Assembly: GCF_003704095.1 (NCBI RefSeq)
Contig: NW_020846987.1
Span: 1 to 64,000 of the forward strand
Direction of reading: 5' to 3'
DNA: 64,000 nucleotides
Origin: Pocillopora damicornis
Lineage: Eukaryota
Shown one piece after another: positions 11,901-47,105 of this stretch (positions are counted from its first letter, which is position 1; every line of letters starts with the position of its first letter). The notes under the pieces are model-generated. The model saw nothing but the letters and a program-made list of their open reading frames with translations, made no database searches and was not told the origin of the DNA. Position numbers and translations under genes: made by a program.

Positions 11901-14401
11901 GTTTGTGCGATATAATTGCCGAGAGAAAGAAAGAGGCAAACGTTCCAAGTTTTTAAATTCTTTCTTTTTTAAAACCACTGGTGGTGAGCTTACAGTAGTA
12001 ACTACAAGCAGTTTTCTTCTTGCGAATAGGATCTCAATGGACGATGGACCCTAGAGAAATAAAGTTTGAATACAGTAAAATAAAATGACGAAGGATAAAG
12101 AAATATTGGAAATCTCTATCATAAAAAAGGGATTAAACAAAACTAGGTTCTAGCTGATGTGGGATGATCTAAATTCAAAACAAGTTCCATTTATAAATTG
12201 GTTTGTAATCATTGAACACCTCTCGTCGCAAGTGAAGTGATCTTTATGCGTCTCCTCTAACAAAATTGCTGTCCTGTTTAAAACCCGTATTTTAGAGCGA
12301 TCTGGAGAGGAGAGAGAAAGGGACCAGCTTCGTCATGAACGACACAAGGAGAGAGAAAGAGATCGTAGAATCTCTAAAGCTGCACCTGATAAAAGGTACC
12401 TAAAGGAACTAGATTAAGAAGTTGAGCTCGGTAATGAAATGGAGAAAGATTCTTTTCTTCTTCTCGCGCGTGTGAGACAAAGAAAACTTTTTGTGTTGTA
12501 TTTACGCACATGATGCTTTCGACGTCAGGATCCTTGTTATATATGAACGTAGTATTGGTCTGACTCACCCATAGAGAGTCTCTGTGGCTCAATGGAAGAG
12601 TACTGCTTCGGAGCGCGGAATCCAAAGACCTGAGCTACGATTCCTCATAGGAAGTCAGGTTTTTTTTTTCCACGTTTTTTATAGGACGAAAAAAATACCT
12701 TAGCTAAGGTGAAATAACTTTCCACATGCTCTCCATATCTACTTTTATTTAAAGTAAAATGTTTTTTATCTTGACTATAGCAAAGCTTGATCACCACCCA
12801 TATACTGTAATTTACTCTTATTTCCTTGGAGTGGCTGAAGCCGTATACTATGCAAAAACTCTGCTTGTCGTTCAAAATAGACATTGATTAGGATATTCAC
12901 ATCAGTGGTAACGGTAGATCTTTGCGCACTTACATGGAATGACTGATTGTTCCTATAGGTCCAAACTTCAGCGTGACAAAGAGCGCGACATAAGTGAGCA
13001 GATTGCATTAGGCCTGGCTTCTGCTCCTCCCTCACAGGAAGCAATGTTTGATCAGCGATTATTTAATCAAAGCAAGGTAAGTCACTACAGTTAATGTCAC
13101 AATTATGCGTCTTTTTCGTATTATTTCAAGGGCATATCTAGGTGACGCGTGCAGAGGTGTACACCCCCCTCCCCCTCGAATTGACCTGCGGCTCTCCTAT
13201 ATGCATACAAATGGTTTTTACAAAATCTGCTGTATTATTTGTAATGTACTATCAGTAGTTCAAGTTGTGGTATTGCCTGGTCACCCTTTAATTACGTCAT
13301 ACCTTATTGATGCACCCCCATCGAAGGAAGATCCTGAATCTGCCGCCGTATCCCTTTCCCCCCACCCCCTACCTGCTTACCGATCCAATTGTATTTAGTT
13401 CCTAACCCTCCCCCTTCCACCACTCTTTGACATTCTTGTGCCTTGTCCGTTAGGGCCTGGACTCCGGATTCGCTGGAGATGACGATGGATACAATGTGTA
13501 CGACAAGGCCTGGAGACGAGAGGGCAGCACAGCCAATGCAATCTATAGGCCGAGCAAGAATGTGGACCGCGATGTTTATGGAGATGATCTGGAAAAACTG
13601 GTTCAAACAAGCAGGTAATTAACTGCGATAACCAAGAACCGAGCACTGTGGGACTTTCTTCTGCCCCTAGTTATATTCCCTTTGAGATTATTGTCAAGGT
13701 AGAGTGTTAAAAAAATTTTTTTCATATTTTTTATACTTTTAGTTTGGCTTCGATTAAAGTATTTAGTTGAAAAATCAAAAAACGGTAATAGATTATTATT
13801 TACAATTTGATGAGCTTTTTTCATTATGTACAGTGCTATGTGGCGAAATAGATGCTTGAAAATATTAAAAAACATTGTTCCGAAGAATGCAGAAATGTTC
13901 TGTCCTTTCGCTAATTTTGAGAGTAGTTTTTCAATTGAACAACGAGGGACTTATTGCTTAGCTTTTTTACTCCCAAGATCTCTTTAGTAATTCTCCTTAC
14001 TGTCAGCTTTACAATTCTGATGATGTTACTTCGGAGAATTTGGTATTGGATCAACTAATAATATATATTTTTGCTTATTCTCATCACTTGTCTGGTTGAT
14101 ATTGGATTGACTTTGTAAGGTGAAATTGAAGAGGAGTTAAAGGATTAAGATGAGATGGTTTGGCTGTTACATTCCTCCCACTTTCACGGCTGTTTTACAA
14201 ATTGTTCTTATATCATGTAATCGGCACTTTCCTGTTTTTCAGGTTTCAGCCTGACAAGGGATTTGCTGGCACAGATCGTGGTCAGCGGCGTGACGGGCCA
14301 GTTCAGTTCGAAAAGGAAGAGGAGGATCCTTTTGGTTTGGACAAGTTTCTTACAGAGGCTAAAAAAGGAAAGAGGCCGTTAGACGAACCCTCCAGATCAA
14401 G
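5938..14401 (+). CDS. SNW1: SNW domain-containing protein 1 (SKIP/Prp45), spliced. Exons 5938-5951, 6032-6107, 6200-6274, 7265-7308, 7661-7691, 7805-7900, 8462-8557, 8874-9085, 10023-10092, 10446-10511, 10680-10796, 11603-11738, 12296-12395, 12959-13076, 13454-13614, 14243-14401; terminal exon not assembled at the native locus
   Basis: Manual GT-AG splicing gives one continuous frame: MSLASLLPAP...EPPPYGKRQGWIPR..DFGDGGAFPEIHVAQYPLDMG...YIRYTPSQQ...KDPMEPPRFK..KIPRGPPSPPAPVMHSP...[32 protein letters not shown]...DQRLFNQSKG...DPFGLDKFL. Confidence 0.96.
7309..7660 (+). other. U12-type (minor spliceosome) GT-AG intron, SNW1 intron 4
   Basis: 5' splice site GTATCCTC; branch-like TTTTCTTAAC at 7638-7647, 13 nt before the intron end; the junction restores the conserved HVAQYPLDMG. 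Confidence 0.8.
8150..8235 (+). mobile_element. Penelope-like retroelement terminal remnant
   Basis: CCCCTGATGAAGGC...TCAAAACGTTGG resembles the CTGA(T/A)GA...GAAAC hammerhead-like core found at Penelope ends. Confidence 0.45.
12560..12670 (+). repeat. tRNA-derived SINE-like fragment (same family at ~22650-22730, - strand)
   Basis: GTGGCTCA(A/G)TGG..CGGAGCGCGGAAT..CTGAG..CGATTCCTCAT, with degenerate A/B-box-like sequence. Confidence 0.5.
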
Positions 14402-14865
14402 GTATTATATACCTCACACTCTGATGATAATCGATCGTTTAATTTGTGTGTAAACAGAACTAGAAAGATCGTAGTTTTGGCGCGCCATCTTTTTGGCCGC
14501 CATCTTTGATTTAAATGGCAGAGGAAGGCTGGAGAGAGAANNNNNNNNNNNNNNNNNNNNNNNNNNNNNNNNNNNNNNNNNNNNNNNNNNNNNNNNNNNN
14601 NNNNNNNNNNNNNNNNNNNNNNNNNNNNNNNNNNNNNNNNNNNNNNNNNNNNNNNNNNNNNNNNNNNNNNNNNNNNNNNNNNNNNNNNNNNNNNNNNNNN
14701 NNNNNNNNNNNNNNNNNNNNNNNNNNNNNNNNNNNNNNNNNNNNNNNNNNNNNNNNNNNNNNNNNNNNNNNNGTTCGTGTGGAACAGGCGTCCTAATAGC
14801 TGGCGCGATCGATAAATTAAGCCATTTGTGAATAAAATGATTTGGTTTTATCTAGTATTTTGATA

Positions 14866-14971
14866 AGGTACATTGGCCACCGGAAAGAGTTTCAAAAAGC
14901 TGACCTTTAGAACGTTTGCCCTTTTGTCGAAACGCCAGCTTCAGAAACTCTTTACGGTGGCCAATTTACCT
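14866..14971. repeat. Palindromic MITE-like or Penelope-derived hairpin in the SNW1 last intron (copy at 21991-22095)
   Basis: Arms AGGTACATTGGCCACCGGAAAGAGTTTC and GAAACTCTTTACGGTGGCCAATTTACCT. Confidence 0.6.
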
Positions 14972-15071
14972 NNNNNNNNNNNNNNNNNNNNNNNNNNNNN
15001 NNNNNNNNNNNNNNNNNNNNNNNNNNNNNNNNNNNNNNNNNNNNNNNNNNNNNNNNNNNNNNNNNNNNNNN

Positions 15072-15212
15072 TGCGTTGAAGCCTTTAGGGACAGGACAAC
15101 ATTTCTTGTCTCTCAGGCTGTCCCGGTCAGTGCAGACTCTGGGAAACTGGCCTTCAACCCAGTGTATAGTGACAACAACAAAGACAAGGTATGTGATGGT
15201 GGGGTTAACCAT
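15072..15212 (-). CDS. Tyrosinase-family copy A, 5' fragment only (truncated by gap)
   Basis: MVNPTITYLVFVVVTIHWVEG-QFPRVCTDRDSLRDKKCCP, paralogous to the 29153 copy. Confidence 0.8.
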
Positions 15213-16519
15213 TTTATGAACGGCTCCCTGAGAAACAAAATTTAGGTCTTGTTGTTATCAGTCCTTCGAATTTAGACGTTCAATAATTATGTGAAACAGA
15301 TATCTCTACCTGATTTTAATAGTTTTAATTATGGTTATAACAATGATGATAAGAATTACAATAATGGTGAAGATGATAATAGAAAAACTTTCAAATAGAG
15401 AGAAACTGGGTATGCTTTTTTTGCTTGTTTTTGAAGAAAAGATGAAACTCAAGACAAACGAGGTTAAGGCGATATGAATTTTTTTTAATATCATACGGGT
15501 TACCACTGTACGCTCCAAACACATCTTGTGTCTCTGTTGTCTCTCTCACCTGGTTCTCACGCTTTTTTGGCAACGAATATATCACCGAAATATTTACCAA
15601 AAGGTTTAAACTTCCAAATCCATTGCTGCTCGCTTAAGAAACTGATTATCTCCACAACGTTATTGGAAATGAGCGGCTTTTCTGGCGCAAAATATCTGCG
15701 ACTCGAATTAAAAGAAAAGTTCATCATATCAGGTCCTCAGCTTACAAAGCTACATAATTGACCGCGATTCAAGTGTATTAATTTCATAAAATGGGTCAAA
15801 TTTTCCAGAAAGCATTCCGTAAGCATATATAGCAAGTCTTACTAGTAACTATAATTTTCGGCCTAAAATCAAACTTTATTGTTAGTGACCGTTTCGTTAT
15901 TTTGTCATAAAAACCTCCTTCGATTTTAGTCAGAGCCTCGTTCTCTCTTTAGAAGTAACTCCCGAAACTCGAAATCAATCCGTGATCGGCCTACAACAAA
16001 AGCATATGCATTTCTGCGGGCTTTGACGAACTGAACATAGTTTGATCATCGGATGTTTGAGACATGTGCATCGAGTAGAATCCGCATTCTGTTTCTTGGA
16101 TAGTTATCGTTTCAAATGTGCCTTAGACATTGTTACAACAGGAGCAGTATATAAATCATTTGTAGCGATAATCCTATGAGCGCCTCTTGATTTAGATCGG
16201 AGCGTCGAGGTAAGATCACGTGTCTTCCTTGATAACTAGTTTAATTAAAGCAAACCTTCGTCTTCTTTTAAACTGCAAGCTTAGTTGTTCTTAAGATTTT
16301 GAAATTTCTCTTCTAGTTCCTCTACTTCGTGGTTCTGTTGACAAGTCGACTGAACAGTAAAACTAAATTGCAAAGAAACTATATCTCATCTATATTGATG
16401 GATTCTTAGAAAAAGGTTCTTCAGAATGAGAGTACTGCGTACCTTTGTTCTCAAGATTTCTTAGAATTCTAGGCGTCTCTACAGGACTTTAGACTCTCCC
16501 TATAAAATATACCTTCGGT

Positions 16520-19500
16520 AGACGCTGCCGAATTTTTCTTCTCTCAGAAGACGGCTGTAGTGCCGTCAGCTTTGCATGCGTCGGCAATTTTTACACGAAG
16601 TGTTTCGTCTTGAGCTCCGAATTGCCCCCAAGGATTCAGCAAACGTACTCGTCAAACTGCATTGTTTCTGTCTTCATGCGACAAATTTCAAGTCGAGGCA
16701 CGGAATAACACTTTAGCAAGTATTAGATAGAAATCACTAAATTTATTTCAGAATTAATCGACATAACAAAGCAGATGCGAAGGTACAAAATCTCTACACG
16801 GTTTACACTTATTGTTCGAACATAAATAATATAGCTTTCCTGGAATGCGCTCTTTTTGTCTGCTGCTGTATGAATATATAATTAGTCTGTGACATTCAGT
16901 TGTTGGTTGCTTGAAGGTTTCACAAAAATGTAACATGGTAACGGGTAAAGTGAAATATATCTTCGGTAGACGCTGCAAACTTTTTTTGTCAGAAGACTGC
17001 TGTAGTGCTTTCAGCTTTGTATGCGTCGGCGATTTGTACGCTGCGTTTTGTTTTGAGCTCCGAATTGCCTCCAAGATTCAGCAAACAAGCTTGACAAACT
17101 GCATTATTTCTGTCTTCATATTATAAATTTCAAGTTTAATTACGGAATAACATCCCAGCAAGCATTAGTTAAAAAGCACTAAATTCGTTTCAGAATTAAT
17201 CTACATGACACAGCAGATGCGAGGGTACAAAATCTCTACACGGTTTTCAGTCGGTGATCGAACATAAATAAGAAATCTTTCCGTGAATGCGCTCTTTTTG
17301 TCGGCACTGCTGTATGAATACACAATCACCCTGTGTCATTCAGGTGTTATTTGCTTGAAGAATTCACAAAACTGTAACGTGGTGACGTGTTTAGTTCGTT
17401 GAAAATCTCTTCGAACTTCTCCTAGCTACCGTCAAGAAGGGAACTTAGCAACATACATATCCGCGGCGCGGAACTTCCCTCGCCGAATAAAAACCTTTGC
17501 GCACTTCAAACGTGGAAGTAACACGGCATTCATAAGGAAAACAAGATCAAAGTGTACCTGAACGACGAGCTTGTTAACTGTGCACTCGTAATGCTTCAGT
17601 TTCTTAGGACTGAAACTTTTGGTATCCTTTCCTGAACACTTCTTGCACCGAAGAACGCGCAAATGATCACGGAACGCTGGAATGTACCGCGTGACTTTAG
17701 TTTACCAAAGGAGGAGTAAGCAATGTTTCGTCGGTCGGGCTCCAGTCGATGGCTAGCTCCGTTGTTAGGCATGCTTTCAAATTAGATGCGACTGTAAGTA
17801 GACGATCATGATCCGGTGTTTTCACCGTTCTTAATTTTGAACAATTTTTCGCATTCGCCAGTCCGAAAGACAACCCCAATCCATACCACGGGTTTCTTGT
17901 TTGAAGCAATANNNNNNNNNNNNNNNNNNNNNNNNNNNNNNNNNNNNNNNNNNNNNNNNNNNNNNNNNNNNNNNNNNNNNNNNNNNNNNNNNNNNNNNNN
18001 NNNNNNNNNNNCGAGTGCTCAGTTAACAAGCTAGTCCTTCAGGTACACTTTGATCTTGTTTTCCTAATGAATGCTGTGCTACTTCCACGTTTGAAGCGCG
18101 CGAAGATTTTAACTCGGCGAGGGACGTTCCGCGCCGCGAATATGTTGCTAGGTTCCCTTCTTATCGGTAGCTAGGAGAAGTTAGGAGAGATTTTCAACGA
18201 ACTAAACACGTCACCATGTTACAGTTTTGTGAAACCTTCAAGCAACTAACGCCTGAATGACACAGACTGATTGTGTATTCCTACAGAATAGCAAACAAAA
18301 AGAGCGCATTCCCGTAAAGATTAATTACTTATGTTCGATCAATGAGTGAAAACCGTGTACAGACTTTGTACCTTCGCATCTGCTATGTAATGTCGATTAA
18401 TTCTGAAATGAATTTAGCGATTTCTATCTAATGCTCGCTTGGATGTTATTCCGTACCTTGTCTTGAAATTTATAGTATGAAGACAGAAATAATGCAGTTT
18501 GTAAAGTATGTTTGCTGAATACTGGAGGCAATTCGGAGCTCAAAACAAAACAAAGTGTACAAATCGCCGGCGCATGCAAAACTGAAATAACTACATCAGT
18601 CTTCTGACAGAAAAAAAGTTTGCAGCGTCTACCGAAGATATATTTCACTTTGCCCGTCACCATGTTACACATGTTCGTACAGCAGTGAAGACAAAAAATA
18701 GCGCATTTCCAGAAAGCTATGTTTTTCATATTCGAACAATGAGTGCAAACCTTGTAGAGATGTTATACCTTCGCATCTGTTGTGTGGTGCGGATTAATTT
18801 TGAAATAATTTTTAGTGATTTCTATCTGATGCTCACTGGGATGTTATTCCGCACCTTGACTTGAAATTTGTAGCATGAAGACAGAAATAACGCAGTTGAC
18901 AAGTACGTTTGCTGAATCCTTGGTGGCAATTCGGATTAAAGATGAAGCATACAGTGTACAAATCGCCGACGCATGCAAAGCTGACGGTACTACAGCAATC
19001 TCATAAGAGAAGAAAAAGAGGCGTCTACCAAAGATATATTTTACAGGGAGACTCTAAAGTCTAATAAAGACGCTTAGAATTCTAAGAAATCTTGAGAACA
19101 AAACATGCCGAACAATGAAGCCAGCTGACCGAAGAAGTATTCCTAACTCCCCACTGGGTAAACTAAAATAATTCGATCTGTTCCAGCATTCCGTGGGCGT
19201 TGGCGTGTTATTCGGTTCAAGAAGTGTTCAGAAAAGGATACTAAAAGTTTCAATCCTAAGAAACTGAAGGATTACGAGTACACAGTTAACAAGCTAGTCG
19301 ATCAGGTACACTTTGTTCTTGTTTTCCTTATGAATGCCGTATTAGTTCCACGTTTGAAAAGTGCAAAGATTTTAATTTGGCGAGGGAAGTTCCGCGCCGC
19401 GGATTTTGTATGTTGCTAGGTTCTCTTCTTGTCGGTAGCTAGGAGAGGTTATAAGAGATTTTCAACGAACTAAACACGTCACCATGTTACAGTTTTGTGA

Positions 19501-21164
19501 AACCTTCAAGCAACTAACACCTGAATGACACAGACTGATTGTGTATTCATACAGCAGTGCAGACAAAAAGAGCACATTCACGGAAAGCTTTATTATTTAT
19601 GTTCGATCAATGAGTGCAAAACCGTGTAGAGACTTTGTACCTTCGTATCTGCAGTGTGATGTCGATTAATTCTGAAATAAATTTAGTGATCTCTATCTAA
19701 TGCTCGCTAAGATGTTATTTCGTGCCTTGACTTGAAATTTGTGGAATGAAATAATGTAGTTCGTTAAGTATGTTTGCTGAATTCTTGGAAGCGATTCAGA
19801 GGTCTACACAAAACACATTGTGTACAAATCGCCGACGCATGCAAAGTTGACGGTACTACAGCAGTCTTCTGAGAGACGAAAAATTCGGCAGCGTCTTCCG
19901 AAGGTATCTTTTACAAGGAGATTCTTAAGTCTAATAAAGACGCTTAGAGTTTTAAGAAATCTTGAGTGCAAAGGTACGCTGCACTCTCATTTTGAGGAAA
20001 CCTTTTCTAAGAATCCATCAAAATAGATGAGAGATAGAGTTTCACTGTAATTTAGTTTTACTGTTCAATCGACTTGTCAATCGCACCGCGACGAACAGGA
20101 ACAAACTTTAAGAGGAGAAACTTTCAAAATCTTAAGAACAAAGAAGCTTGCAGTTTTAAAGAAGACGAAGGTATGCATTAATTAAACTCGTTCTCATGGA
20201 AGACACGTAGTCTTACCTCGACGCTCCGATCTTAATCAAGAGGCGCTCATAAGATGATCGCTACAAAGGATTTATGTACTGCTCTTGTTGTAATAATGTT
20301 CAAGGTACATTTTAAACGAAGATTATCCAAGAAACAGAATGCGGATTGTACTCGATCCACATGTCTCAAACATTCGATGATCAAACTATGTTCAGTTCGT
20401 CAAAGTCCTTACCAGAAATACGCGTGCATGATAAAAAGAGCGCATTCCCGGAAAGCCTTACTATTTATGTTCGATCAACGAGTGTAAACCGTGTAGAGAT
20501 TTTGTACCTTCACATCTGCTGCGTGATGTCGATTAATTCTAAAATGAATTTAGTGATTTCTATCTAATGCTCGCTAGGATGTTATTCCACACCCTGACTT
20601 GAAATTTGTAGTATGAAGAAAGAAGTAATGCAGTTTGCCGTAAAGTATGTTCACTGAATCCTGGAGGCAATTTGGAGCTCAAAACAAAACACAGTGTACA
20701 AATCGCCGACGCATGCAAAGCTGAAGGCACTACAGTAGTGTTCTGACAGAAAAAAAGTTTGCAGCGTCTACCGAAGATATATTTCACTTTACTCAACACC
20801 ATGTTACAGTTTTGTGAAACCTTCAAGCAACTAATACCTAGTCACAGAATAATTATATATTCATACAGCAGTGCAGACAAAAATAGCACATTCCCGGAAA
20901 GCTACATTATTCATGTTCGAACAACGAGTGCAACCGTGTAGAGATGTGCCTTCGCATCTGCTGTGTCATGTCGATTAATTGTGAAATAAATTTAGTGATT
21001 TCTATCTGATGCTCGCTAGGATGTTATTCCGCACCTTTACTTGAAATTTGTAGAATGAAGACAGAAATAATGCAGTTTGACAAGTACGTTTACCAAATCC
21101 TTGGTGGCAATTCGGATTAAAGACGAAACATAAAGTGTACAAATCGCAGACGCATGCAAAGCTG
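16520..21164. repeat. ~400-450-bp diverged tandem repeat of the tyrosinase upstream block (also ~26030-27700, 33185-33540, 51255-51480)
   Basis: Recurrent unit ACCGTGTAGAGATTTTGTACCTTCGCATCTGC...TACAAATCGCCGACGCATGCAAAGCTG...CACCATGTTACAGTTTTGTGAAACC; spacing about 440 bp (16780/17220; 20507/20949). Confidence 0.85.
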
Positions 21165-21820
21165 NNNNNNNNNNNNNNNNNNNNNNNNNNNNNNNNNNNN
21201 NNNNNNNNNNNNNNNNNNNNNNNNNNNNNNNNNNNNNNNNNNNNNNNNNNNNNNNNNNNNNNNNGCTCAAATCGGAAATTACATATTTTTTACGATCGTC
21301 ATGCGTGTCTGTGCGTGCACGCTATGGTGGAAATGAGTGGGGAAGGGTGGGAAGATGCCGATATCTCGTTTTAAGCGCGAATTTTAAAAGCAAATTACAA
21401 GGTATTGTGCGATTGTGGCTAATGCGGCACGGAGTAACGTTCTTACCTATATCGTTCTGTCCACAACCAAAAAGGTAACGTATTTTCTTCCCCTAAAAAG
21501 GGGCGTAGTTTGGTAAATATTTAACTCAATAATCACACTGCTTATAAGGCACACATATGTCTAATTTTGCTTCGTTGTCAAGAACTTGGGGTCCGAGCGT
21601 AATGTGAGAAATTACATGTGTAATACAGCAATGATTACTGCCACATTCGACCCAGGTCAACAGAACCTTTTTTTTTGTCATTTAGATTATTATTCCTATG
21701 TACAAGGACACAAATGTTGTTTTGCAAATGTTTTTTAGACGCAAGTTCTGATGTCTCCTTGAGTATTAGTTTGACAGAAGTTCATTACTTTAAATGAAAC
21801 AACAACTTTTGGTTGTTTCA

Positions 21821-23042
21821 TCATTTTCTCTTCGCACTCCGACTTTCGTGATCCCTGGAAAAAAAATAAAAAATAAATAACAAGTAGCAAATAGAATGAG
21901 TAGATTTTCGCTGAGGAGTATTTACGGATTGATTCTGTAGGTTCTGGAAGGTATTACTAAATAATTTGGTTTTTTCAACTATTTTGATACGGTAAATTGG
22001 CCACTGTAAAGAGTTTCTAAAACTGACGTTTCGACAAAAGGGAAAACGCTCGAAACGTCAGCTTTTTAAAACTCTTTCCGGCGGCCAATTTACCTTACCA
22101 ATTCTGTTGATAAAATCAAATAATTTTATTCACAAATAGCTTAATTTATCGATCACACCAGCTGTAAGGACACTTGTTCCTCGCACAAAAGCCACACGAA
22201 TCTATCTATCTACACGTAGGCTATATTCACCCGGCCAACTGTCTACTCCCCCGCCTCCACCCCTCCCCTCACTTTTTACTGTCGCTCACCCCCTTGATAC
22301 AAATTTCTTTCTCTCCCCAGCCTTCCTCTGCCATTTAAATCAAAGCTTGCGGCCATACTTGTCGCTAAGAAAATACCAAGCACTCGCTCTCCAAAACTAC
22401 GCATGCTCTGCAGGGTACACAATGATAGCAAACAAAGAATACTCATATTATAGTTTCGTATATGTATCATTGAAACAGGTGCAAAACTAAAATTGGCTTT
22501 GTCTTGCTAAAAACCACGCTGTCAACTAATTCTTTAACCCTCTCATTTCCTAACCTCACTTTCATTCAACGATTTGGTTTCATTTCCAAAAATATAACTG
22601 GCAGAGAAAGATGTTTTCGTATTGTAAAGAGCGCGGAGCAAATAAAAAACTTTTTGAGTTTTCATGAGGAATCGAACCTCAGACCGTCGAATTCCGCGCT
22701 CCGATGCAGTACCACTGAGCCACATAGACTTTAAAGCAAGCTAAGTCATTACGAGTCCTATGCTGGTGACAAGACGAGATAACATATTTCTCGACTTCAC
22801 TTCAGAATGTATCCTTTGCGATCTTTCTTATTCTGTTTACACACAAAGTAAATGATCGATTATCATCAGAGTTTGAAGTATATAATACCTTGATCTGGAG
22901 GGTTCGTCCAACGGCTTCCTTCCTTTTTAGGCCTCTGTAAGAAACTTATCCAAACCAAAATGGTCTTCCTCTTCCTTTTCAAACTGAACCGGCCCACCAC
23001 GCCGCTGACCACGATCTGTGCCAGCAAATACCTTGTCAGGCT
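21821..23042 (-). pseudogene. SNW1: Duplicated 3' end of SNW1: most of exon 16 (22889-23042), last intron and terminal coding exon (21854-21821, (R)DHESRSAKRK*)
   Basis: Reverse complement matches 14248-14970 with substitutions. Further on, ttttttttccag|G GAT CAC GAA AGT CGG AGT GCG AAG AGA AAA TGA is in phase with exon 16. Confidence 0.85.
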
Positions 23043-23044
23043 AT

Positions 23045-24038
23045 TATTAGCTCACAGCCTTCTGAAGTAAAACTTCTTCGGTGTCTGTTCGTTCGCTTGC
23101 CGGCAATCGATCTTAGAGTAAAATTCTTATCTTCTTCCTCGAGCTACATTTGCAAAGTTACAACAAAAATCAAACGTAATTAGCTCTACTACTTTACATC
23201 ATCTGCGCAAACCAGTTTAATAAGTTTACCTCTCCTTAATACAGTACATAAATACACATGTACAGCCATCAGCCACAACTGCCAATCTCACCTTTCGTAG
23301 CTGGTTCTTCTGGTTTTTCTTCCGATTCTACTTGCTCTGATACTGGATCTTCGACAGCCGGCGTTTCTTCTCTTTCATCAGGCACGTTTTCACCTTCTGG
23401 GGGTGGCTCGTCTTTTGTAATGTCATCCAAATATGGTGTAGTCGAAGAGACATCCTCCTCATCCTCCATGCCTGATGAGAAATCTACCAAGTCTCCTGTT
23501 TCTGGTGAAGCGGACTCTGACATTGTAAAACTGAATATCCACAAACGTTTACGCCTGACCTCCTATATGACACTTTTAAACTTTAAGTAAAAGGACCAGA
23601 AAGTTAGATCTTACGCAAGGACGAAATTTAGAAGTGACGGTGGATTGTGTTTTCAAAACTCACACTGGCGCAATTTTCTATGAGTGGCCATATTTGGGAA
23701 AGCAGATGTGAACGGACCAATCAGAGTAGTCATTATAATTCTCTTTCAATATTCCTCCAAATAAGGAAGTCTCAAAGTTCAAAGTGAACCCAGAGCGATC
23801 TACTGCTTTTTTTCTTTTTATTCTTCAGCAGAAAAAAATACAATCTGATAGAGTTTATTAATTCAGATCGAAAACTCGCTTCGGGGACCACAAACTTATA
23901 TACGAAATGATCCTCGTGTGAACAGCGATAAAGGAAGTTGCAAAAATAGGAAAAATGAAAAATTTCAGGCTTCGCTACGACGGGATTCGAACCTGTTCCT
24001 CCCAGAATACCAGACATATGGTTTTTACTACCTCCTAA
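23045..24038 (-). pseudogene. Duplicated 5' end of the reticulon gene (promoter, exon 1, most of intron 1)
   Basis: Reverse complement of ~54463-55436; MSESASPETGDLVDFSSGMEDEED...EEPATK with an intact GT donor. Confidence 0.88.
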
Positions 24039-25733
24039 GATTCGAAACCACATATCACAAAAGAGGACAATATAGGCAGTTTTTTATTTTTTCCTTGATA
24101 TTGAACGCGATTAATTTTAGTCGGACTTGGAGGTGAAAAAAAAAAAGGATCATGACAAAGATGAACTGAAATAAGGGAAAGAGAAGCCTAAAAAATTCTC
24201 GGTTTCCACTGGGTTTGAACTATGCCTTCCAAACACTAGCTGGGTGCTAATATCAACTGAGCTAACAACGCCAAACCACAGGCATTTTGAAAGCTCTCGT
24301 GTAAAAACAAACAAACAAAAACAAAACAGAAAACAACAAAAAGAAAAAGGCCTCGACGTGGTTCGAACTCATGCCTTCCATGCAAAGTGAGTTTCGAAGC
24401 CACATTTTGGAAGCGAATTTCGTCCAAAGTGTGCAGTGGTTGGCGGGGGGGGGGGGGGGNNNNNNNNNNNNNNNNNNNNNNNNNNNNNNNNNNNNNNNNN
24501 NNNNNNNNNNNNNNNNNNNNAGATTAGATACAAAACTACGACTTGCGAAGAATAGGCTTATGTGGCCGGTGCACAAAGTGAAAAGAAAGTTGATCTAAGG
24601 GCAAAGTGCGATCGCCAGGATTTCCCAGCCAGATCCTGATCCTAAAATACGCACTGGCGTAAATGCCGCCTCCCAACCCCTCCCCCGTCGTGCGTAAGGC
24701 ACGCAGGTTAGTAAATAATAAACAAAGTTCACTCGTGGTCGCATTTAACCAACAAATAGACTTCAAATATCGAGGTGTGCCTCTTATAAAAGTGCTTTTA
24801 CATATATAAAAAAAGAAGACCGTCTTCTTGAAGGCCTTGATGCTTTTTTTGCGTGGTTATATTTTAAGGTTACTTTACTCCACATACGAATGTCTCGCTA
24901 CTGTAATGTTCTTAATACTTCTTTACTAAGCTCAGCACAGCTACACTCCTAAAAAACTAACTCTTTTCTCCTATATTGGGTATACTCAGTTATTCCTTCT
25001 AATCTTCCCAGACTTAAAGTCCACTGTACTTCATACTACTGTACATTATTGTACTGTGCTCTACTCTATGACTCTACCATTTCTACTCTTCTCTTCCTTC
25101 ATCCTCACTTCTTCTCTCTTAGCCTGTTCCAGCCTCTCAATCAGCGAAGACGAGCGAGAAAGCGAACACGCGAAAAATGGCGCGCGCTTCAACTTGCAGG
25201 CAAGCGGGCGTGATCTGCAGACGTCTCCTTGGTAACCGCAGCCGCCGCGTCCTGCTTACTTCAACACAGCGGTCCAACGTCTGCGCATGTGCGCAGGTTG
25301 TAATTACTACGTAGAGTGCTGTCAGAAACGAGTTACACACAGCCTCACATGTAAGTTAGTCGAGGTGTTTTGCAATCGTCTTTGTTTTTGTTAAAGATTA
25401 AAACGGAAAGGTGAATCAACAGGATACCCGTACTTGAATTAGCTTCGTGTTCTTAAATTATCGAGTTTTCTTTCCCTACTTTATTTCCTCTTACAGATAA
25501 CGATGCACGTATCAATTTTCTTTCGCTTATTTTGCGAGACAGGAGCTGTTTTTATGTTTTTTTAGAAATTTTGCGCGGGAAAATGGCGCGCGGCCTGCCA
25601 GAATTGATCCACCCGAGCACATCTGACGTTTGACCGCTGTGTTGCTTGCTTCCCAGTTTTCCCACACTCACTATTTCACGCATCTCTACTTACTAAGAGC
25701 CTAAGGCAGGCTAATTCTCTTCACTCCCTGTCT

Positions 25734-25895
25734 TCAATCAGCCAATAGCAACTGCCATACTAACATGACTGACATCAGCCACCAACACATTAGCTTTCCA
25801 GGCGCTGCAGATTTAGGAAGGTTAGGGTAGTATTTAGGTTGTGGACAATCTCCCAAAGACTTTGATTCATCTTCTTTCTCGTCATCAGGAGACCT
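25734..25895 (-). CDS. Tyrosinase-family copy B, terminal exon only (rest in gap)
   Basis: RSPDDEKEDESKSLGDCPQPKYYPNLPKSAAPGKLMCWWLMSVMLVWQLLLAD*, homologous to 31526-31665. Confidence 0.8.
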   Translation of the reverse strand, partial: RSPDDEKEDESKSLGDCPQPKYYPNLPKSAAPGKLMCWWLMSVMLVWQLLLAD

Positions 25896-28800
25896 NNNNN
25901 NNNNNNNNNNNNNNNNNNNNNNNNNNNNNNNNNNNNNNNNNNNNNNNNNNNNNNNNNNNNNNNNNNNNNNNNNNNNNNNNNNNNNNNNNNNNNNNGTAGC
26001 TAGGAGAAGTTAGGAGAGATTTTCAATGAACTAAACACGTCACCATGTTACAGTTTCGTGAAACCTTCAAGCAACTAACACCTGAATGACACAGACTGAT
26101 TGTGTATTCACACAGCAGTGCTGACAAAAAGGGCGCATTCACGGAAAGCCTTATTATTTATGTTCGATCAACGAGTAAAAACCGTGTAGAGACTTTGTAC
26201 CTTTGCATCTGCTGTGTAATAACACTTAATTCTGAAATGAATTTAGGTATTTCTATCTAATGCTCGATAGGATTTTATTCCGTACCTCGACTTGAAATTT
26301 ATAGTATGAAGGCAGAAGTTATGCAGTTTGTAAAGTATGCTTGCTGAATCCTGGAGGCAATTCGAAGGTCAAGAGAAAACACACGGAGTACAAATCGCTG
26401 ACGCATGCAAAGCTGAAGGCACTACAGCAGTATTCCGATAGAAAAAAGTTTGCAGGGTCTGCCAAATATATATTTTTAACTTTACTCGTCATCATGTTAC
26501 AGTTTACCTTCAAGCAACTAACACCTGGTCACAGACTTATTGTATATTCGTACATATATATTCAGACAACAAAAGAAGAGAAGAAGAAGNNNNNNNNNNN
26601 NNNNNNNNNNNNNNNNNNNNNNNNNNNNNNNNNNNNNNNNNNNNNNNNNNNNNNNNNNNNNNNNNNNNNNNNNNNNNNNNNNNNNNNNNNNNNNNNNNNN
26701 NNNNNNNNNNNNNNNNNNNNNNNNNNNNNNNNNNNNNNNNNNNNNNNNNNNNNNNNNNNNNNNNNNNNNNNNNNNNNNNNNNNNNNNNNNNNNNNNNNNN
26801 NNNNNNNNNNNNNNNNNNNNNNNNNNNNNNNNNNNNNNNNNNNNNNNNNNNNNNNNNNNNNNNNNNNNNNNNNNNNNNNNNNNNNNNNNNNNNNNNNNNN
26901 NNNNNNNNNNNNNNNNNNNNNNNNNNNNNNNNNNNNNNNNNNNNNNNNNNNNNNNNNNNNNNNNNNNNNNNNNNNNNNNNNNNNNNNNNNNNNNNNNNNN
27001 NNNNNNNNNNNNNNNNNNNNNNNNNNNNNNNNNNNNNNNNNNNNNNNNNNNNNNNNNNNNNNNNNNNNNNNNNNNNNNNNNNNNNNNNNNNNNNNNNNNN
27101 NNNNNNNNNNNNNNNNNNNNNNNNNNNNNNNNNNNNNNNNNNNNNNNNNNNNNNNNNNNNNNNNNNNNNNNNNNNNNNNNNNNNNNNNNNNNNNNNNNNN
27201 NNNNNNNNNNNNNNNNCATGTTCGAACAATGAATGAAACCGTGTAGAGATGTTGTACCTTCGCATCTGCTCTGTCATGTCGATTCATTCTGAAATAAATT
27301 TAATGATTTCTATCTGCTGCTCGCTGGGATGTTATTCCGCGCTTTGACTTAAAATTTGTAGTTTGAAGACAGAAATAATGCAATTTGACAAGTCTGTTTG
27401 CTGAATCCTTGGAGGCATTTCGAAGGTCAAGAAGAAACATAAAATGTACAAATTGCCGACGCATGCAAAACTATGTTCGATCAACGAGTAAAAACCGTGT
27501 AGAGATTTTGTACCTTCGCATCAGCTGTGTAATAAAACTTAATTCTGAAATGAATTTAGGTATTTCTATCTAATGCTCGATAGGATTTTATTCCGTACCT
27601 CAACTAGAAATTTGTAGTATGAAGGCAGAAGTAATGCAGTTTGTAAAGTATGCTTGCTGAATCCTTGGAGTTAATTGGGAAGTCAAGACGAAAAATATAG
27701 TGTAAAAACCACCAAATTTCCGAGGTACATTTTAAACGATGACTATTCAATAAACAGAGTGCGGATTGTACTCGATGCACATGTCTCAAACATCTGATGA
27801 TCAAACTAAGTTCAGTTCGTCAAAGTCCTTACCAGAAATGCGCATGCTTTTGTTGTAGGCCGATCTCGGATTGCTTTCGAGTCTCGGTACGTAATTTTCG
27901 GGAGTTGCTTCTAAATAGAGAAAGAGGCTCTGACTAAAATCGAACTGAGGAGGCTTTCATGAAAAAGCAGCGAATTGGTCTTACGCAATAAAGTTTAAAT
28001 TTGGGCCGAAATTTATATTTACTAGCAAGACATGCAGTATATACTTACGGAATGCTTTCTAGGAAAGTTGACCCATTTTATAAATTAAATCCAGTGGCAT
28101 CGCCGTCAATTATGTGGTTTTGTAAGCTGAGGACCTGATGAAATTTTCTTTTAATTCGAGTCGCAGATATTTTGCGTCAGAAAAGCCGCTCATTTCCAAT
28201 AACGTTGTGAAGAAAATCAGTTTCTCAAGCGAGCAGCGATGGATTTAGAAGTTTAAACCTTCTGGTAAATATTTTCGAGGATGGATTCGTTGCCAAATAA
28301 GCGTTAGAACTAGATCAAAGAGACAACAGAGAAACAGGATATGTTTCAAGCGTACAGTGATAACCCGTATGACTTTAAGAAAATTCATATCATCTTAACC
28401 TCGTTTGTTAGGTAGTCTGGATATACTGCGTGACTAATTCGCAGAATGTGAATAACAATTGCGTAGTGAGAACTGGGAGGTAAGTTTCGGGAAATGTAGA
28501 TCCCGATTCACTTAAAAGGAATAAAACCGAAGATTTTGGATCTGAACAGTTGTTACCTTCAAAATCACAAACAGTTAAATTAAGCTGGTTATGATTGCTA
28601 AGTTCTTGAGATAAAGCGAATTCTAAATTACGGCTCGTTGTTGTAAGGATTTTCATGCGACGAATAAACTTATAGCATAAACAATAACAGAACCAGAATA
28701 ATAAAGAGTACAGGTGGAATTTTTCGAGATGCATAATCCAACCGTTTGTGACATAAAAACTGATAAAAAAGAAACATTTATTCAAGAAGCAAAGGTTTTG

Positions 28801-29152
28801 ATGACATCCGGTCCTTTCCAGACTCTAAAATCTAGCAATCCACAGTGTTAAATCATTTTTAGGGTCATGTAGCCCTAAAGATTGGAAACACATGCAGTCA
28901 TTGCAGGATGGATCAATTAACTTCGGGCTTTAGTGAGATAAAATTCAAAAGGAAATGTATAAAATAATTAACCTTTTTTCCCTGGCTTAGCGAGGTTTAA
29001 AGAAAATAATTTTCATTTATTATCATCATCATCATCATCATCATTATTATAATTCTTATCATTATTGTCATTACTATTATTATGTTTCACATAATTGTTG
29101 AACGTCTAAACTCGAAGACCTAAATTTTATCTTTCAGGGAGTCGATCATAAA

Positions 29153-31665
29153 ATGGGTTACCCCATCATCGCATACCTTGTCTTTGTTGTCGTCACTTTA
29201 CCCTGGGTAGAAGGCCAGTTTCCCAGAGTCTGCACTGACCGGGACAGTCTGAGAGACAAGAAATGTTGTCCTACTCCTAGTGACTTCACCACAGAATGTG
29301 GTTACGATGGAGGCAGAGGACAGTGCCATGAATTGACCACCCATGATTGGACATCTAAATACAGCCATTACCGGCCGTTCCAGATGGAGGACGAGAGACA
29401 CAACTGGCCGCATGGTCTTTACCACAAAGTCTGCAAATGCAACGCAAACTATGCAGGTTACGATTGCAGCAAATGCGCGTTTGGCTTCTATGGCAGTACC
29501 TGCACGCAGAAGAAAAATTTGATACGAAGAAATTTTCTGAACCTGACAACCGAGGAGAAAGATCGATACATGAGATACGTCAACATGTCCAAGCACTATG
29601 TAAGTGACTTCGTGGTTACGTCTACTCCTTACAAGGAGATAAACAAAACCGTTATGGAGGGTGGCGACCCAAAGTCCTTCTTTTATAATGTCACTTACTA
29701 TGACTTGTTCACGTGGATGCATTACTATGCTGCAAGTGACACCATTTTACCTCATGATATCACTGAATCTGATATCGACTTCGCACACGATGGTCAGGGA
29801 TTTCCCTCATGGCATCGGTTGTACTTGTTAGCATGGGAGAGAACCTTGCAGGAAATTGGAAACGATGAAGAATTTGCCCTCCCTTTCTGGGACTGGACCG
29901 GGAATCCCACTGGATGCGACCCCGCAGTTTGCTCTGAAGAGCTCCTTGGCGTAACGGACCAAACTACTGGCATTGTGAGGGGCAAATACTTGAATGACTG
30001 GTACGTCCTTTGCACCGGCAAACAAACCCAACAACTAACAAAGCCGTGTAACCCCACCATAACAAGAAATGGATTGAAACGGAACACAGATGATGAGAAG
30101 AAGAAGAAAAAAGGAGAAGGATATACTATGACATTTCCAACAAAAACAGAAGTCAACTTCGCGCTCCGTTTTGAAACCTTTGACCTCCAACCCTACAGCA
30201 AAAGTTCTAGCTGCAGTTTTAGAAACATCCTGGAGGGTTATGCCAGCGCCGAAACTGGTCGTCACCATTCTGACGTCCATGGCATGCACAACCAGGTCCA
30301 CATAGTTGTTGGAGGAGAAATGGGGGACGTACCTTCGGCATCAAACGACCCAATTTTTCCTCTTCATCACGCGTTTGTGGATCGTATCTATGAAAAGTGG
30401 TTGCGGAAGTTTAATAAAGATGCAAATGTGCTATCCACTTACAATGCACCCATTGGTCACAACAGAGATGACGTCATTGTGCCGTTGTTTCCGGTTTACA
30501 CTCACCAACAGATGTTCAAGAAGTCTTTCGAGTTCGGTTATGATTACCAAGACGTCGATGAAAAAGGTGAGAATGAATGTTTTGCTTTCCATTGTATTTT
30601 GGTTGACTTTTATGTGACTAGTTAATTATCAGAGTCAAAACTCCTCTGCCTGCCCAATGTTTTTCAGGCAATGTCCGTGTTTTAAATTGGTTAAATAGAT
30701 TCGTAAAACCAGTGGGCACCACGTGGGATAAAGTGCGCGATATGACCCTTCGCACGAGCTTAGCTGGCGGGGGTACGCCCCCTCCTCCCCTCCTCCCCCC
30801 ATATTTGGGAAAAGTGAATACCGTATTTCCTTGAATAAACGATTGGGTGCTCATAAAATTTCGGCTAAAAGGGTGATGGGGAGGGGGGCGCTTATTGGTA
30901 GGAGGTCGCTTTACCAAGAGGGCGCTCATTAAGTTAGCGCTTTTATAAGCCAAAAAATCAAAATCAAAAGAACAGGTAAAACTCATAAAGGAATTCTACA
31001 AGCGCACGAAGACGGAAATATCCGGAACGGAAAAGAAACTCGGGAACTGAAGCTCAAAAAGTTATAGATAAAGTGGCACCAGAAACAGGTTTTCCTTGCA
31101 TCCCCACTATTTAAGAAAGTGAGGAAGGGGAGGGACGGTTTCTTCAATTTATGGCCTAAGGGGTGAGCACTTATTCGAGAAAATACGGTAATTATAATCC
31201 TTTAAAATTCCATTAGTTCGTGAGTGTTTTCCACTTCTCCCAGTGTTGGTATTTTAAATATCACAATAAATCGAAAGTTTCAGTGATCTTAAACAAGCAT
31301 TTCATTTTTGTCTCTGGGCAAAATTATGACAAATTTATTTTCTTGCCTTTTAGTCTCATGGTAGGAACACTTCTTGGAGAGAAAACTCTGAGGAGTGTAC
31401 TTACACATTCACTTAATTCCAACTCCTCCGCTTCCCACCATTCCTCGTCTCTCCTCTCATACCCTGTGTAGTTTGTCCACTATAACTGTTGCTATCCAAA
31501 ATTCACAAGAAGTACCTTTGTTTAGGCAGGTCTCCTGGTGACGAGAAAGAAGATGAATCAAAGTCTTTGGGAGATTGTCCAACTAAATCTGCAGCGCCTG
31601 GAAAGCTAATGTGTTGGTGGCTGATGTCAGTCATGTTAGTATGGCAGCTACTTTTGGCTGATTGA
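29153..31665 (+). CDS. Tyrosinase/TYRP-family type-3 dicopper oxidase copy C; coding exons 29153-30566 and 31526-31665
   Basis: Signal peptide, QFPRVC Cys-rich EGF-like domain, CuA (WMHYY..FAHDGQGFPSWHR), CuB (HNQVH..SNDPIFPLHHAFVD). Donor AAAG|gtgag and acceptor tttag|GC give the in-frame tail GRSPGDEKEDESKSLGDCPTKSAAPGKLMCWWLMSVMLVWQLLLAD*. Confidence 0.93.
30821..31188. mobile_element. Tc1/mariner-type MITE in the tyrosinase intron (homologous copies in the D, E and F introns)
   Basis: TA|CCGTATTTCCTTGAATAA ... TTATTCGAGAAAATACGG|TA: TIRs with a TA target duplication. Confidence 0.75.
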
Positions 31666-31669
31666 AGAC

Positions 31670-32862
31670 AGGGTGTGAAGAGAATTAGCTTGCTTTAGGC
31701 TCTTAGTAAGTGGAGATGCGTGAAATAGTGGGTGTGGGAAAAGCAGGAAGCAGGCCACACAGCGGTCAAACGTCGGGTGTGCGCAAGGGGTTCAATTCTG
31801 GCAGGCCGCGCGCCATTTTCCCGCGCAAAATTTCTAAGGAATACATAAGAAACAGCTCCTGTCTCGCAAAATAAGCGAAAGAAAATTGAAACGTGCATCG
31901 TAATCTGTAGAAGAAAATAAAAGTAGGGAAAAAGAAAACTCGATAATTTTCGAACACGAAGCTTATTCAAGTACGGGTATCCTGTTGATTCACCTTTCTG
32001 TTTTAATGGTTTCCGAAAAAGAACGACGGTTGCCAAACAAATCGACTCTCTTGAATGTGAAGCTGTGTGTAACTCGTTTTTGACAGCACTCCACGAAGTA
32101 ATTACAACATGCGCACATGCGCAGACGTTGGACCGCTGTGTTGAAGCAAGGGGGGCGTGATGGTTGCGGTTACTAGAAAGACGTCTGCAGATTACGTCCG
32201 CTTGCCCGCAAGCTATCACGCGCGCCATTTTTCGCGTATTCGCTTTTTCGCTCGTCTTCGCTGATGAGAGGCTGGAACAGGCTAAGAGAGAAGAAGTGAG
32301 GATGAAGGAAGAGAAGAGTAGAAGTGGTAGAGTCGTAGAATAGAGCACAGTACGATAATGTACAGTAGCATGAAGTACAGTGGACTTACGTCTGGAAAGA
32401 TTAGAAGGAATAACTGAGTATACACAGTATTGGATAGAAGAGTTAACTTTTTAGGAGTGTAGCTGTGCTGAGCTGAGTAAAAAAGTATTAAGAACATAAC
32501 AGTAGCGAGTGAGTCGTATATGAAGTAAAGTAACCTTAAATCTAACCACACAAAAAAGCATCAAAGCCTTCAAGAAGTTAGAAGTCTTCTTTTTTTCTAT
32601 ATGAAAAAGCACGTTTATAAGCAGCACATCTCGATATTTGAAGTCTATCTTGTGATTAAATGCGACCACGAGTGAACTTTGTCCATTATTTACTAACCTG
32701 CGTGCCTTGCACACAACGAGGGAGGGGTGGGAAGGCGGCATTTAAACCAGTACGTATTTTAGGATCAGGATCTGGGTAAGAAATCCTGTCGTCCCAACTT
32801 TACCCTTTCTTCACTTTGTGCACTGGCCATTCGTTATCAGTCGTTTATTTTGTATCTAATCT
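31670..32862 (+). repeat. Tyrosinase downstream block of the amplified unit; copies at ~24520-25730(-), 35845-36625(+), 36726-37645(-), 40146-41420(-), 44439-45520(+), 52070-52706(-)
   Basis: Shared sequences such as GGCCGCGCGCCATTTTCC, CAAGTACGGGTATCCTGTTGATTCACC and GAAGAGAAGAGTAGAAGTGGTAGAGTCGTAG. Confidence 0.9.
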
Positions 32863-39802: not shown

Positions 39803-39956
39803 NNNNNNNNNNNNNNNNNNNNNNNNNNNNNNNNNNNNNNNNNNNNNNNNNNNNNNNNNNNNNNNNNNNNNNNNNNNNNNNNNNNNNNNNNNNNNNNNNN
39901 NNACTTTTTACATAGTATACGAAAAATATGTATTTTTGGGTTTACATGCCCTTTAA

Positions 39957-40145
39957 AGTTGAGAAGAACACTACAACAGCTCTGCTATTTTAATGGTTGG
40001 TCACCAAAAGCTGTTCAGTACCTTTTTAAGCACTTACTTGAAGGGATTCTCAGTGCCGCTTTTCTGGATAGCACCCATAACAGTCATGCCAACCCTATAA
40101 GGCAGCGACACTGTTAACAGCGCCATGGAGAAGAAGGTCACAACA
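39957..40145 (-). pseudogene. Second reticulon fragment: 3' half of the first RHD exon plus the start of the next intron
   Basis: Near-identical reverse complement of 57552-57739 (VVTFFSMALLTVSL.YRVGMTVMGAIQKSGTENPFK|gtaagt). Confidence 0.88.
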
Positions 40146-46800: not shown

Positions 46801-47105
46801 TTAACATTTTCCCCCTGGCCAAGTGAGGTTTATAGATAACAATTGTTATTTTGAGTTTCACCTTTTCCTCAAAAACAAACACCAAAAACACACCCAGTTT
46901 CTCTCTATTTGAAAGTTTTCATGATTTCTATTATTATTATTATCATCATCATTATTATAATTCTTATCATTATTGTTATTACTATTATTAGAACTATTAA
47001 AATTAGACAGAGATATCTATGTTTTACATAATTGTTATACGTCTAGACTCGTAGGACAGATAACAATTAGACCTAAATTTGATCTCTCAGGTAGTCTATC
47101 ATAAA

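Follow-up and report, generated by a model that had tools for sequence, protein, structure and literature searches.

We found that partial copies of RTN and SNW1, the two genes that bound a tyrosinase array in Pocillopora damicornis, are joined to each other within this array. Judged from sequence comparisons, the join is very probably the novel junction left behind when a segment was duplicated head-to-tail (in tandem) long ago. In the window (the whole DNA sequence of 64,000 nucleotides that was analysed), the minus strand switches at 23042/23045 from an RTN copy (promoter, exon 1, 247 nt of intron 1) to a copy of the SNW1 penultimate exon, after which copies of the last intron, the terminal exon and the 3′ flank of SNW1 follow in turn. 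The junction itself, read on the minus strand from 23055 to 23031, is GTGAGCTAATA-AT-AGCCTGACAAGG. The features of the stretch, in minus-strand order, and of the two parental regions are as follows:

25737..25895, minus strand: last coding exon of a tyrosinase, with the stop codon at 25736-25734; the contig starts at the exon start or at most 2 nt from it
24521..25736, minus strand: tyrosinase downstream block (3′ UTR and intergenic), common to other tyrosinase units
24460..24520, no strand: assembly gap of 61 N with a true length of about 5-13 nt; continuous
24039..24459, minus strand: intergenic block from the tyrosinase 3′ region to the RTN promoter copy (self-BLAST, long-contig match)
23524..24038, minus strand: copy of the RTN promoter and 5′ UTR region, with 87.4% (23834-24038) and 88.8% (23045-23796) matches to the parent
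23292..23523, minus strand: copy of RTN coding exon 1, with the ATG at 23523, 77 codons plus 1 nt, an intact ORF and the GT donor at 23291-23290 kept
23045..23291, minus strand: copy of the first 247 nt of RTN intron 1, ending at the breakpoint, which equals parental 55436 (self-BLAST, three-way alignment)
23043..23044, minus strand: two filler bases, AT (three-way alignment; letters identical in 11 independent contigs)
22889..23042, minus strand: copy of the SNW1 penultimate coding exon without the acceptor and the first 5 nt, 91.1% identical to 14248-14401
22181..22888, minus strand: copy of the SNW1 last intron, holding a dispersed repeat of about 150 nt at around 22600-22755
21991..22180, minus strand: copy of the 3′ part of the SNW1 terminal exon, 85.8% identical to 14781-14970, with an AATAAA signal
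21265..21990, minus strand: copy of the SNW1 3′ flank, running into a satellite of about 440 bp ahead of the next tyrosinase
14243..14401, plus strand: parental SNW1 penultimate exon, with the breakpoint between 14247 and 14248
54464..55436, plus strand: parental RTN promoter, exon 1 (ATG at 54953) and start of intron 1, with the breakpoint after 55436

In a self-BLAST of the window, 23045-23796 corresponded to 55436-54675 (88.8% identity, E 0) and 23834-24038 to 54668-54464 (87.4%) on the RTN side, and 23042-22819 corresponded to 14248-14471 (91.1%, E 1e-82) and 22180-21991 to 14781-14970 (85.8%) on the SNW1 side. The genes were identified with Pfam, with exons searched singly: SKIP_SNW matched the plus strand exons 8868-9095 and 10680-10820, Tyrosinase matched 29102-30622 and Reticulon matched 57423-57659.

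The original prediction had joined RTN 55436 to SNW1 at about 14248, and a three-way alignment sets the switch in homology exactly at this position. On the SNW1 side the breakpoint is located 5 nt inside the penultimate exon (acceptor 14240-14242) and not in an intron; the parental frame of this exon (...R/FQPDKGFAGTDRG...) carries on from the exon ending at 13615. The join had also been described as having no long homology, which agrees with our searches. When the surroundings of both parental breakpoints (about 1 kb) were compared by BLAST with word size 7, no homology was detected between them (best E 0.076), and the longest common word within 60 nt of these breakpoints was 8 nt long and located off the junction. 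Microhomology was sought at the RTN/SNW1 junction as well, where none was convincing. Non-allelic homologous recombination, or unequal crossing-over, was rejected as the origin of this join, since the parental breakpoints are without a long homologous stretch. We infer end joining or template switching as the mechanism behind the junction.

Moving away from the junction, each side stays collinear with the flank of its bounding gene for more than 2 kb. The sequences next to the junction share 83-91% identity with the window's intact SNW1 and RTN genes; at such identities the join is neither a recent event nor a parental chimera. For RTN, copy and parent are separated by a K2P distance of 0.116 (961 aligned nt), and the exon-1 copy differs from the parental 54953-55184 by 5 synonymous and 6 non-synonymous codon differences. 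The RTN parent carries a dispersed-repeat insertion just upstream, which is absent from the copy. On the SNW1 side, copy and parent are 83-91.5% identical. In an independently assembled contig of 726 kb (ERZ25067899:ctg66790, hereafter the long contig), the two versions of the SNW1 last intron align collinearly, the copy being about 460 nt longer, and the SNW1 3′ flank copy (19062-19967) is collinear with the parental flank (1160-2298) at 83-85% identity. The dispersed repeat of about 150 nt in the intron copy has at least 40 scored matches across the window's own assembly. For the terminal exon, the comparison covers the 3′ part with the AATAAA signal, the parental coding start being within the N gap 14541-14772. 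Copy-versus-parent differences are transposon insertions.

Identical junction letters were found in 11 independently assembled public contigs, of which 10 are Tara Pacific metagenome scaffolds and one is the long contig, and the junction is present in many colonies. As the same letters recur in independent assemblies whose flanks differ by 0.5-4%, an assembly chimera is excluded and the event predates the split of those lineages. Of the stretch's words, 14 DNA runs from 5 studies contain 79-85%. It is extremely improbable that the join is either an assembly chimera or the result of a transposon capturing both gene fragments. The window scaffold is indeed mis-ordered and mis-oriented at N gaps, and the stretch is located between two of these gaps. 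However, the junction is in a part of the sequence without gaps, the independent assemblies reproduce it to the letter, and its flanks differ from the parents by 9-17% and are thus not a mis-join of them. Against a capture by transposons, the fragments derive from precisely the two genes that bound the array, and each runs collinearly into its own flank.

A 93-kb walk along the long contig gave, on one strand, the order SNW1 - TYR1 - TYR2 - [RTN 5′/SNW1 3′] - TYR3...TYR9 - RTN. The junction is thus located between both parents and on the same strand, with duplicated content on either side. Complete tyrosinase genes of the same orientation are present on both sides of the junction, likewise in Tara scaffold L012. 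Partial pieces of SNW1 and RTN occur exactly twice each, as parent and as copy, in the window's own assembly and in the long contig, whose self-comparison was performed without the part homologous to 24297-24347 (later window queries stopped at 24296 and resumed at 24348). As the window scaffold stands, the junction is on the minus strand and therefore not on the same strand as the parents. Wherever the window and the long contig disagree in order or orientation, they do so at an N gap, and the minus-strand placement of the junction is a scaffolding artefact. Moreover, the long contig harbours 9 tyrosinase copies, compared to 3 intact copies, 1 degraded copy and fragments in the window. The locus shows how a short-read scaffold scrambles a tandem cluster: at least five contigs of the window have the wrong orientation or position, and roughly half of the gene copies are absent.

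The right end of the stretch had been annotated as a last tyrosinase exon, which was borne out by two observations. A canonical phase-1 donor (DVDEK/GTGAG) closes the large tyrosinase exon, and a conserved phase-compatible ORF, ending in ...SAAPGKLMCWWLMSVMLVWQLLLAD and a stop, follows 7 tyrosinase units of the long contig, with indels only in-frame. Two hydrophobicity-threshold scans for this exon gave nothing, and a motif search then located it; the encoded C-terminus is a hydrophobic, predicted GPI-signal-like tail. The downstream block (24521-25736) is 82-89% identical to 31583-32807, 44439-45400, 40218-41311 and 35847-36625 in the self-BLAST, and 99.6% identical to L011:2684-4059. Further towards the junction, 24302-24450 corresponds to 52074-52223 (89%, self-BLAST of the window), and 24296-24036 matches the long contig upstream of the parental RTN (88.9%). 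Both sides of the gap at 24460-24520 are collinear on one strand in 10 independent contigs, where they are 168-176 nt apart. Compared to the 163 real letters (24297-24459), this gives the length of about 5-13 nt listed above, sized from flank distances alone. As the gap is in intergenic DNA, no reading frame is at stake.

The junction flanks are homologous to the distal end (54464-55436) and the proximal start (14248-14970) of one contiguous parental segment. With the head-to-tail layout in the long contig and no homology at the breakpoints, this supports the original prediction of a tandem duplication of the SNW1(3′)-TYR-RTN(5′) segment, or an equivalent reintegrated circle. Starting from an ancestral order SNW1, tyrosinase, RTN on a single strand, the segment from 5 nt inside the SNW1 penultimate exon to 247 nt into RTN intron 1 would have been duplicated in tandem. 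Non-homologous joining would have connected the distal (RTN 5′) end of this segment to its proximal (SNW1 3′) start, with the two filler bases in between. Tyrosinase alone would have been duplicated whole, while the two partial gene copies would have persisted mid-array as a dead-end fusion. The present nine-tyrosinase array around the join would then have resulted from later rounds of duplication, deletion and transposon insertion. The gene lists of the long contig show only tyrosinase genes and transposons between SNW1 and RTN, and the earlier claim that only tyrosinase gains dosage is therefore fair.

The same join would also be obtained if a larger tandem duplication had at first included SNW1 and/or RTN as whole genes (SNW1-TYR-RTN-SNW1-TYR-RTN), and a deletion from RTN intron 1 to the SNW1 penultimate exon had later taken out the redundant gene bodies. 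Deletions of similar size do occur in the array: downstream of tyrosinase copy T5, we found a copy of the junction unit that is 97-98% identical and is missing exactly the 3.9 kb with the RTN/SNW1 part. The array also holds 520 nt from an internal exon and intron of RTN, a stray piece that could likewise be taken as a leftover of such a larger duplication. However, this piece breaks an otherwise contiguous sequence and so resembles an insertion more than a remnant, no other SNW1 or RTN 5′ remnant is present in the window's own assembly, and two events are needed where one suffices. We consider this deletion scar unlikely. Somewhat less likely still is that the segment was excised as an extrachromosomal circle and then reintegrated at the locus. 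The junction of such a circle would be the same RTN 5′/SNW1 3′ join in the same head-to-tail layout, but an extra reintegration step is required for an end product that is indistinguishable from a tandem duplication, and the 93 kb that were read contain no second novel junction, as non-homologous reintegration would leave.

The event is old, as the identity between the junction paralogs (83-91%) is similar to that among the tyrosinase copies (88-93%). It is one step of a longer history that yielded the 9 tyrosinase copies. The tyrosinase tree is star-like, with T1 pairing with T4 and T2 with T5, and shows no split between the copies to the left and to the right of the junction; the junction event can therefore not be placed first in this history. 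Gene conversion is evident in the array. Moreover, non-allelic homologous recombination probably acted in the later rounds of amplification, because the units share long homology.

No ORF was found across the fusion, as RTN exon 1 ends in phase 1, whereas phase 2 is used for the SNW1 exon. The copy of this SNW1 exon contains an in-frame TAA at 22929-22927, which is common to all 11 contigs (one contig has a second stop), and is a pseudo-exon. For the RTN exon-1 copy, 10 contigs that were picked by exact protein match showed 3 variable sites, all synonymous, compared to 4.5-13% variable columns in the flanks. The cluster listing of this ORF comprises a further 90 variants, among which are many amino-acid changes, one frameshift and mosaics of copy and parent; in the parental ORF, 2 residues differ between the long contig and the window. 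Purifying selection on the copy was considered and is unsupported, given that the sample was chosen by protein match and that a frameshift is among the 90 variants. The ORF of the copy is intact but without clear constraint. A functional chimeric gene is likewise unsupported, since the SNW1 exon copy has no acceptor and carries the shared TAA, no ORF crosses the fusion, and the exon-1 ORF variants include a frameshift.

It is unlikely that the RTN promoter and exon-1 copy drives a chimeric transcript, which would end at the SNW1 terminal-exon copy with its poly(A) signal or extend into the next tyrosinase. Such a putative transcription unit would have been retained across Pocillopora lineages. 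As hints at a chimeric transcript, we noted that one allele, the exact 84-aa ORF of the RTN exon-1 copy, is found on 102 public contigs, and that 6 RNA runs contain 11-22% of the stretch's words in RNA-derived contigs.

The junction provides a base-level record of the amplification of a coral immune or stress-related family, the tyrosinase-type phenoloxidases, in which a non-homologous head-to-tail duplication would have cut both housekeeping neighbours and copied only tyrosinase. It also offers a stable marker, common to these lineages, by which the later events of the array can be ordered. As a biological principle this is nothing new, and the event is of an ordinary kind in coral genomes. 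Tandem segmental duplications with boundaries in flanking genes leave partial or chimeric copies at the novel junction, as seen in Drosophila and in human copy-number variants. The coral locus is alike in its head-to-tail layout, its single distal-to-proximal junction, its truncated boundary genes and an internal gene that alone is complete. Nothing essential differs, except that the coral scar is old, has outlived more amplification and is present in several Pocillopora lineages. Unequal crossing-over also yields tandem arrays, but the RTN/SNW1 join differs by having no parental homology and two filler bases.

Lineage-specific expansions of tyrosinase (phenoloxidase) have been described in corals, for example in Porites (PMC8691061). 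As here, a tyrosinase-type phenoloxidase expanded within a coral lineage; that study, however, concerns another genus and rests on gene trees rather than on the anatomy of a junction. Tandemly duplicated gene clusters are pervasive in Pocillopora and other coral genomes, and short-read assemblies lose and scramble copies in these clusters (Noel et al. 2023, PMC10236652). The genus and the process are the same as in our case, and copies are likewise lost and scrambled at the tyrosinase locus. The main text of that study contains neither tyrosinase nor breakpoints, and to these clusters the tyrosinase locus adds a junction at base level.

When the stretch was read on the minus strand, the join at 23042/23045 had the sequence GTGAGCTAATA-AT-AGCCTGACAAGG, and a three-way alignment confined the switch of homology from the reticulon gene (RTN) to SNW1 to two bases, as the original prediction had read it at ~23042. 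All the elements listed in that prediction (last tyrosinase exon, RTN 5′ part and SNW1 3′ part) were recovered by self-BLAST, ORF and alignment. In the self-BLAST of the window, the sequence upstream of the join (23045-24038) matched the parental region 54464-55436 with 87-89% identity; this part comprises the promoter and exon 1 of RTN as well as the initial 247 nt of its intron 1. Downstream, 23042-22819 matched SNW1 14248-14471 (91% identity) and 22180-21991 matched SNW1 14781-14970 (86% identity). The two intact parental genes are located at opposite ends of the window, with SNW1 on the plus strand and its exons matching SKIP_SNW (Pfam, exon by exon), and between them we found tyrosinase copies on both strands and a ~440-bp satellite. 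For the domain matches exons were queried singly, so that gene identities refer to single exons rather than to a spliced model.

Features of the window
14243-14401, plus strand: SNW1 C-terminal exon, ...FQPDKGFAGTDRG..., of the SNW1 gene of the window
25895 to 25737, minus strand: last tyrosinase exon, at the right end of the stretch
54953: ATG of parental RTN exon 1, at the opposite window end from SNW1
57423-57659: parental RTN Reticulon-domain exon (Pfam match)

The satellite units (16505-21164, 25996-27708, 33186-33894 and 51256-51960; 78-93% identity among themselves) fill the space from the SNW1-type 3′ flank to each tyrosinase promoter.

The RTN exon-1 copy encodes an 84-aa ORF that was found in 102 public contigs. 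The 10 longest of these were compared, namely the 726-kb contig ERZ25067899:ctg66790 (long contig) and nine scaffolds assembled from different Tara Pacific metagenome samples. All 10 span the junction in one BLAST alignment each (96.2-99.5% identity). These contigs and an eleventh scaffold agree in every letter of the junction and in an in-frame TAA of the SNW1 exon copy, with polymorphisms among the 11 on either side. In addition, 79-85% of the words of the stretch were present in 14 DNA runs from five studies; the runs that contain the stretch are coral and marine metagenomes. Searches of the window's own assembly (234,350,878 bases, 4393 contigs) showed that the junction is unique there and that each partial gene piece occurs only as parent and copy. 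Divergence of 9-17% between the flanks and their parents excludes a mis-assembly of the parental genes as the origin of the join. The fusion of RTN to SNW1 is thus confirmed, with support from independent assemblies.

A run of 61 N (24460-24520) interrupts intergenic DNA, with the tyrosinase 3′ block on one side and the copied RTN promoter on the other, and is crossed by no reading frame. Both sides are collinear and on the same strand in 10 independent contigs, in which the flanks lie 168-176 nt apart versus 163 real letters in window 24297-24459. The gap is therefore continuous and stands for ~5-13 nt, a size taken from the distances between flank alignments.

The window scaffold contains 15 N runs. 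Compared block by block with the long contig, its blocks are 96-100% identical, and those mis-ordered or mis-oriented are 15072-17911, 21265-25895, 39953-44338 and 49469-52706 (all inverted), 44439-49368 (misplaced) and 18012-21164. Every break in order or orientation coincides with an N gap, and thus the minus-strand placement of the stretch is a scaffolding artefact. In the window, about half of the nine tyrosinase copies of the long contig (T1-T9) are either absent or collapsed; T1, T4 and several others have no window counterpart at ≥95% identity. This agrees with published findings that copies in tandem clusters go missing from short-read assemblies of corals (PMC10236652).

A walk along the long contig (record positions 339440-432500, merged into 93,061 bases with no N) gave the following layout.

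Features of the long contig, in merged coordinates
254-477: SNW1 penultimate exon
802-1037: SNW1 terminal exon
4809-6260: tyrosinase T1
10001-11467: tyrosinase T2
12467-15117, opposite strand: LINE element in the last intron of T2 (same figures in piece L025)
15154-15321: T2 last exon
17477-17731: RTN exon-1 copy
17955/17958: RTN-SNW1 junction
17958-19722: SNW1 3′ copy, then satellite
27401: tyrosinase T3
37767: tyrosinase T4
43938: tyrosinase T5
52713: tyrosinase T6
61840: tyrosinase T7
66834: tyrosinase T8
72451-73695: MULE transposon
78833: tyrosinase T9
88303-88557: parental RTN exon 1

Apart from the LINE element, which has its genes on the opposite strand, all these features share one strand. 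This layout is what a head-to-tail duplication predicts, and it supports the tandem-duplication reading first proposed for the stretch. The LINE (L025:12467-15117) carries RVT_1 and endonuclease domains, and its position corresponds to an N gap (49369-49468) in the window. The MULE-type transposase ORF between T8 and T9 (L031:16876-18120) has no window counterpart.

Two further irregularities were observed in the array. A stray second RTN piece, made up of a portion of the Reticulon-domain exon together with intron, is located at window 39953-40145 (parent 57551-57743) and at L033:17968-18489 of the long contig, where it measures ~520 nt. It lies between the 3′ block of the last tyrosinase unit and the region upstream of RTN. 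Its identity to the parent is 97.9% in the window, compared with only 91% in the long contig, and it resembles a templated insertion or the scar of another rearrangement. Downstream of T5, L028:9740-11483 is a copy of the junction unit (97-98% identity) without the 3.9 kb that hold the RTN-SNW1 part; the tyrosinase 3′ region directly abuts the SNW1-derived flank at ~10085/10086 of L028. This structure indicates that the unit was later re-duplicated and then lost sequence by a deletion.

The original prediction of no long homology at the join also held. The best match between the parental breakpoints had an E value of 0.076 (BLAST, word size 7, ~1 kb around both), which is no homology, and the longest word common to both within 60 nt was 8 nt, off the junction. 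The two filler bases and the lack of homology favour end joining or template switching over unequal crossing-over as the likely mechanism.

The RTN-side copy diverges from its parent by a K2P distance of 0.116, and the SNW1-side copy is 83-91.5% identical to its parent and collinear across 2 kb. Comparable divergence was found among the tyrosinase copies (88-93% identity to one another). Orthologous junction contigs differ by at most 4%; paralog divergence is several times larger, which argues from sequence comparison that the duplication is old, older than the separation of the lineages sampled. Because the tree of the tyrosinase copies is star-like, with T1 pairing with T4 and T2 with T5, the junction event is not demonstrable as the first duplication. 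The differences between copy and parent are insertions. A ~150-nt dispersed repeat (at least 40 scored matches in the window's own assembly, 75-89% identity, often in inverted pairs) lies in the copied SNW1 last intron at window ~22600-22755. A several-kb dispersed repeat sits directly upstream of the parental RTN promoter (52807-53372 and 53904-54460; at least 40 scored matches per piece in the assembly, pieces often adjacent) and is absent from the copied promoter. The third is the LINE in the T2 intron.

The SNW1 breakpoint lies 5 nt inside the penultimate exon, which begins GTTTCAG... and whose frame carries on from the exon ending at 13615; the acceptor is therefore absent from the copy. 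The in-frame TAA of the exon copy is at 22929-22927. In the parental SNW1 gene, coding sequence of the terminal exon begins inside an N gap. The RTN exon-1 copy retains its ATG, 77 codons and GT donor, with five synonymous and six non-synonymous codon differences from the parent. Because the phases across the fusion are incompatible (1 versus 2), the SNW1 acceptor is gone and the stop in the SNW1 exon is common to the contigs, the fusion is probably not functional as a protein. Six RNA runs contained 11-22% of the words of the stretch.

At first sight the ORF of exon 1 seemed conserved in the 10 compared contigs (three variable sites, all synonymous). We rejected purifying selection on it as unsupported, since these contigs were picked via an exact protein match to the ORF and its 90%-identity cluster holds 90 further variants, including amino-acid changes and a frameshifted form. 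Some alleles of the copy (protein variants P0005 and P0011; ORF 23272-23523, minus strand) have the residues of the parental type at positions 55, 60 and 83, suggesting gene conversion with the parent.

The large tyrosinase exon terminates at a phase-1 donor (DVDEK/GTGAG). A phase-compatible ORF is kept after seven tyrosinase units of the long contig, with all indels in-frame. This last exon (25737-25895, minus strand) encodes the small residues SAA and then a hydrophobic tail that, as judged from its sequence, resembles a GPI-anchor signal.

Tandem-duplication junctions with truncated boundary genes are a textbook outcome, and the RTN-SNW1 junction is like them in its truncated boundary genes; its reading as a head-to-tail tandem duplication is supported. 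In Pocillopora, tandem duplication is known to be pervasive (PMC10236652), and expansions of tyrosinase genes have been described in corals (PMC8691061). The junction is real, but it represents an ordinary kind of event.
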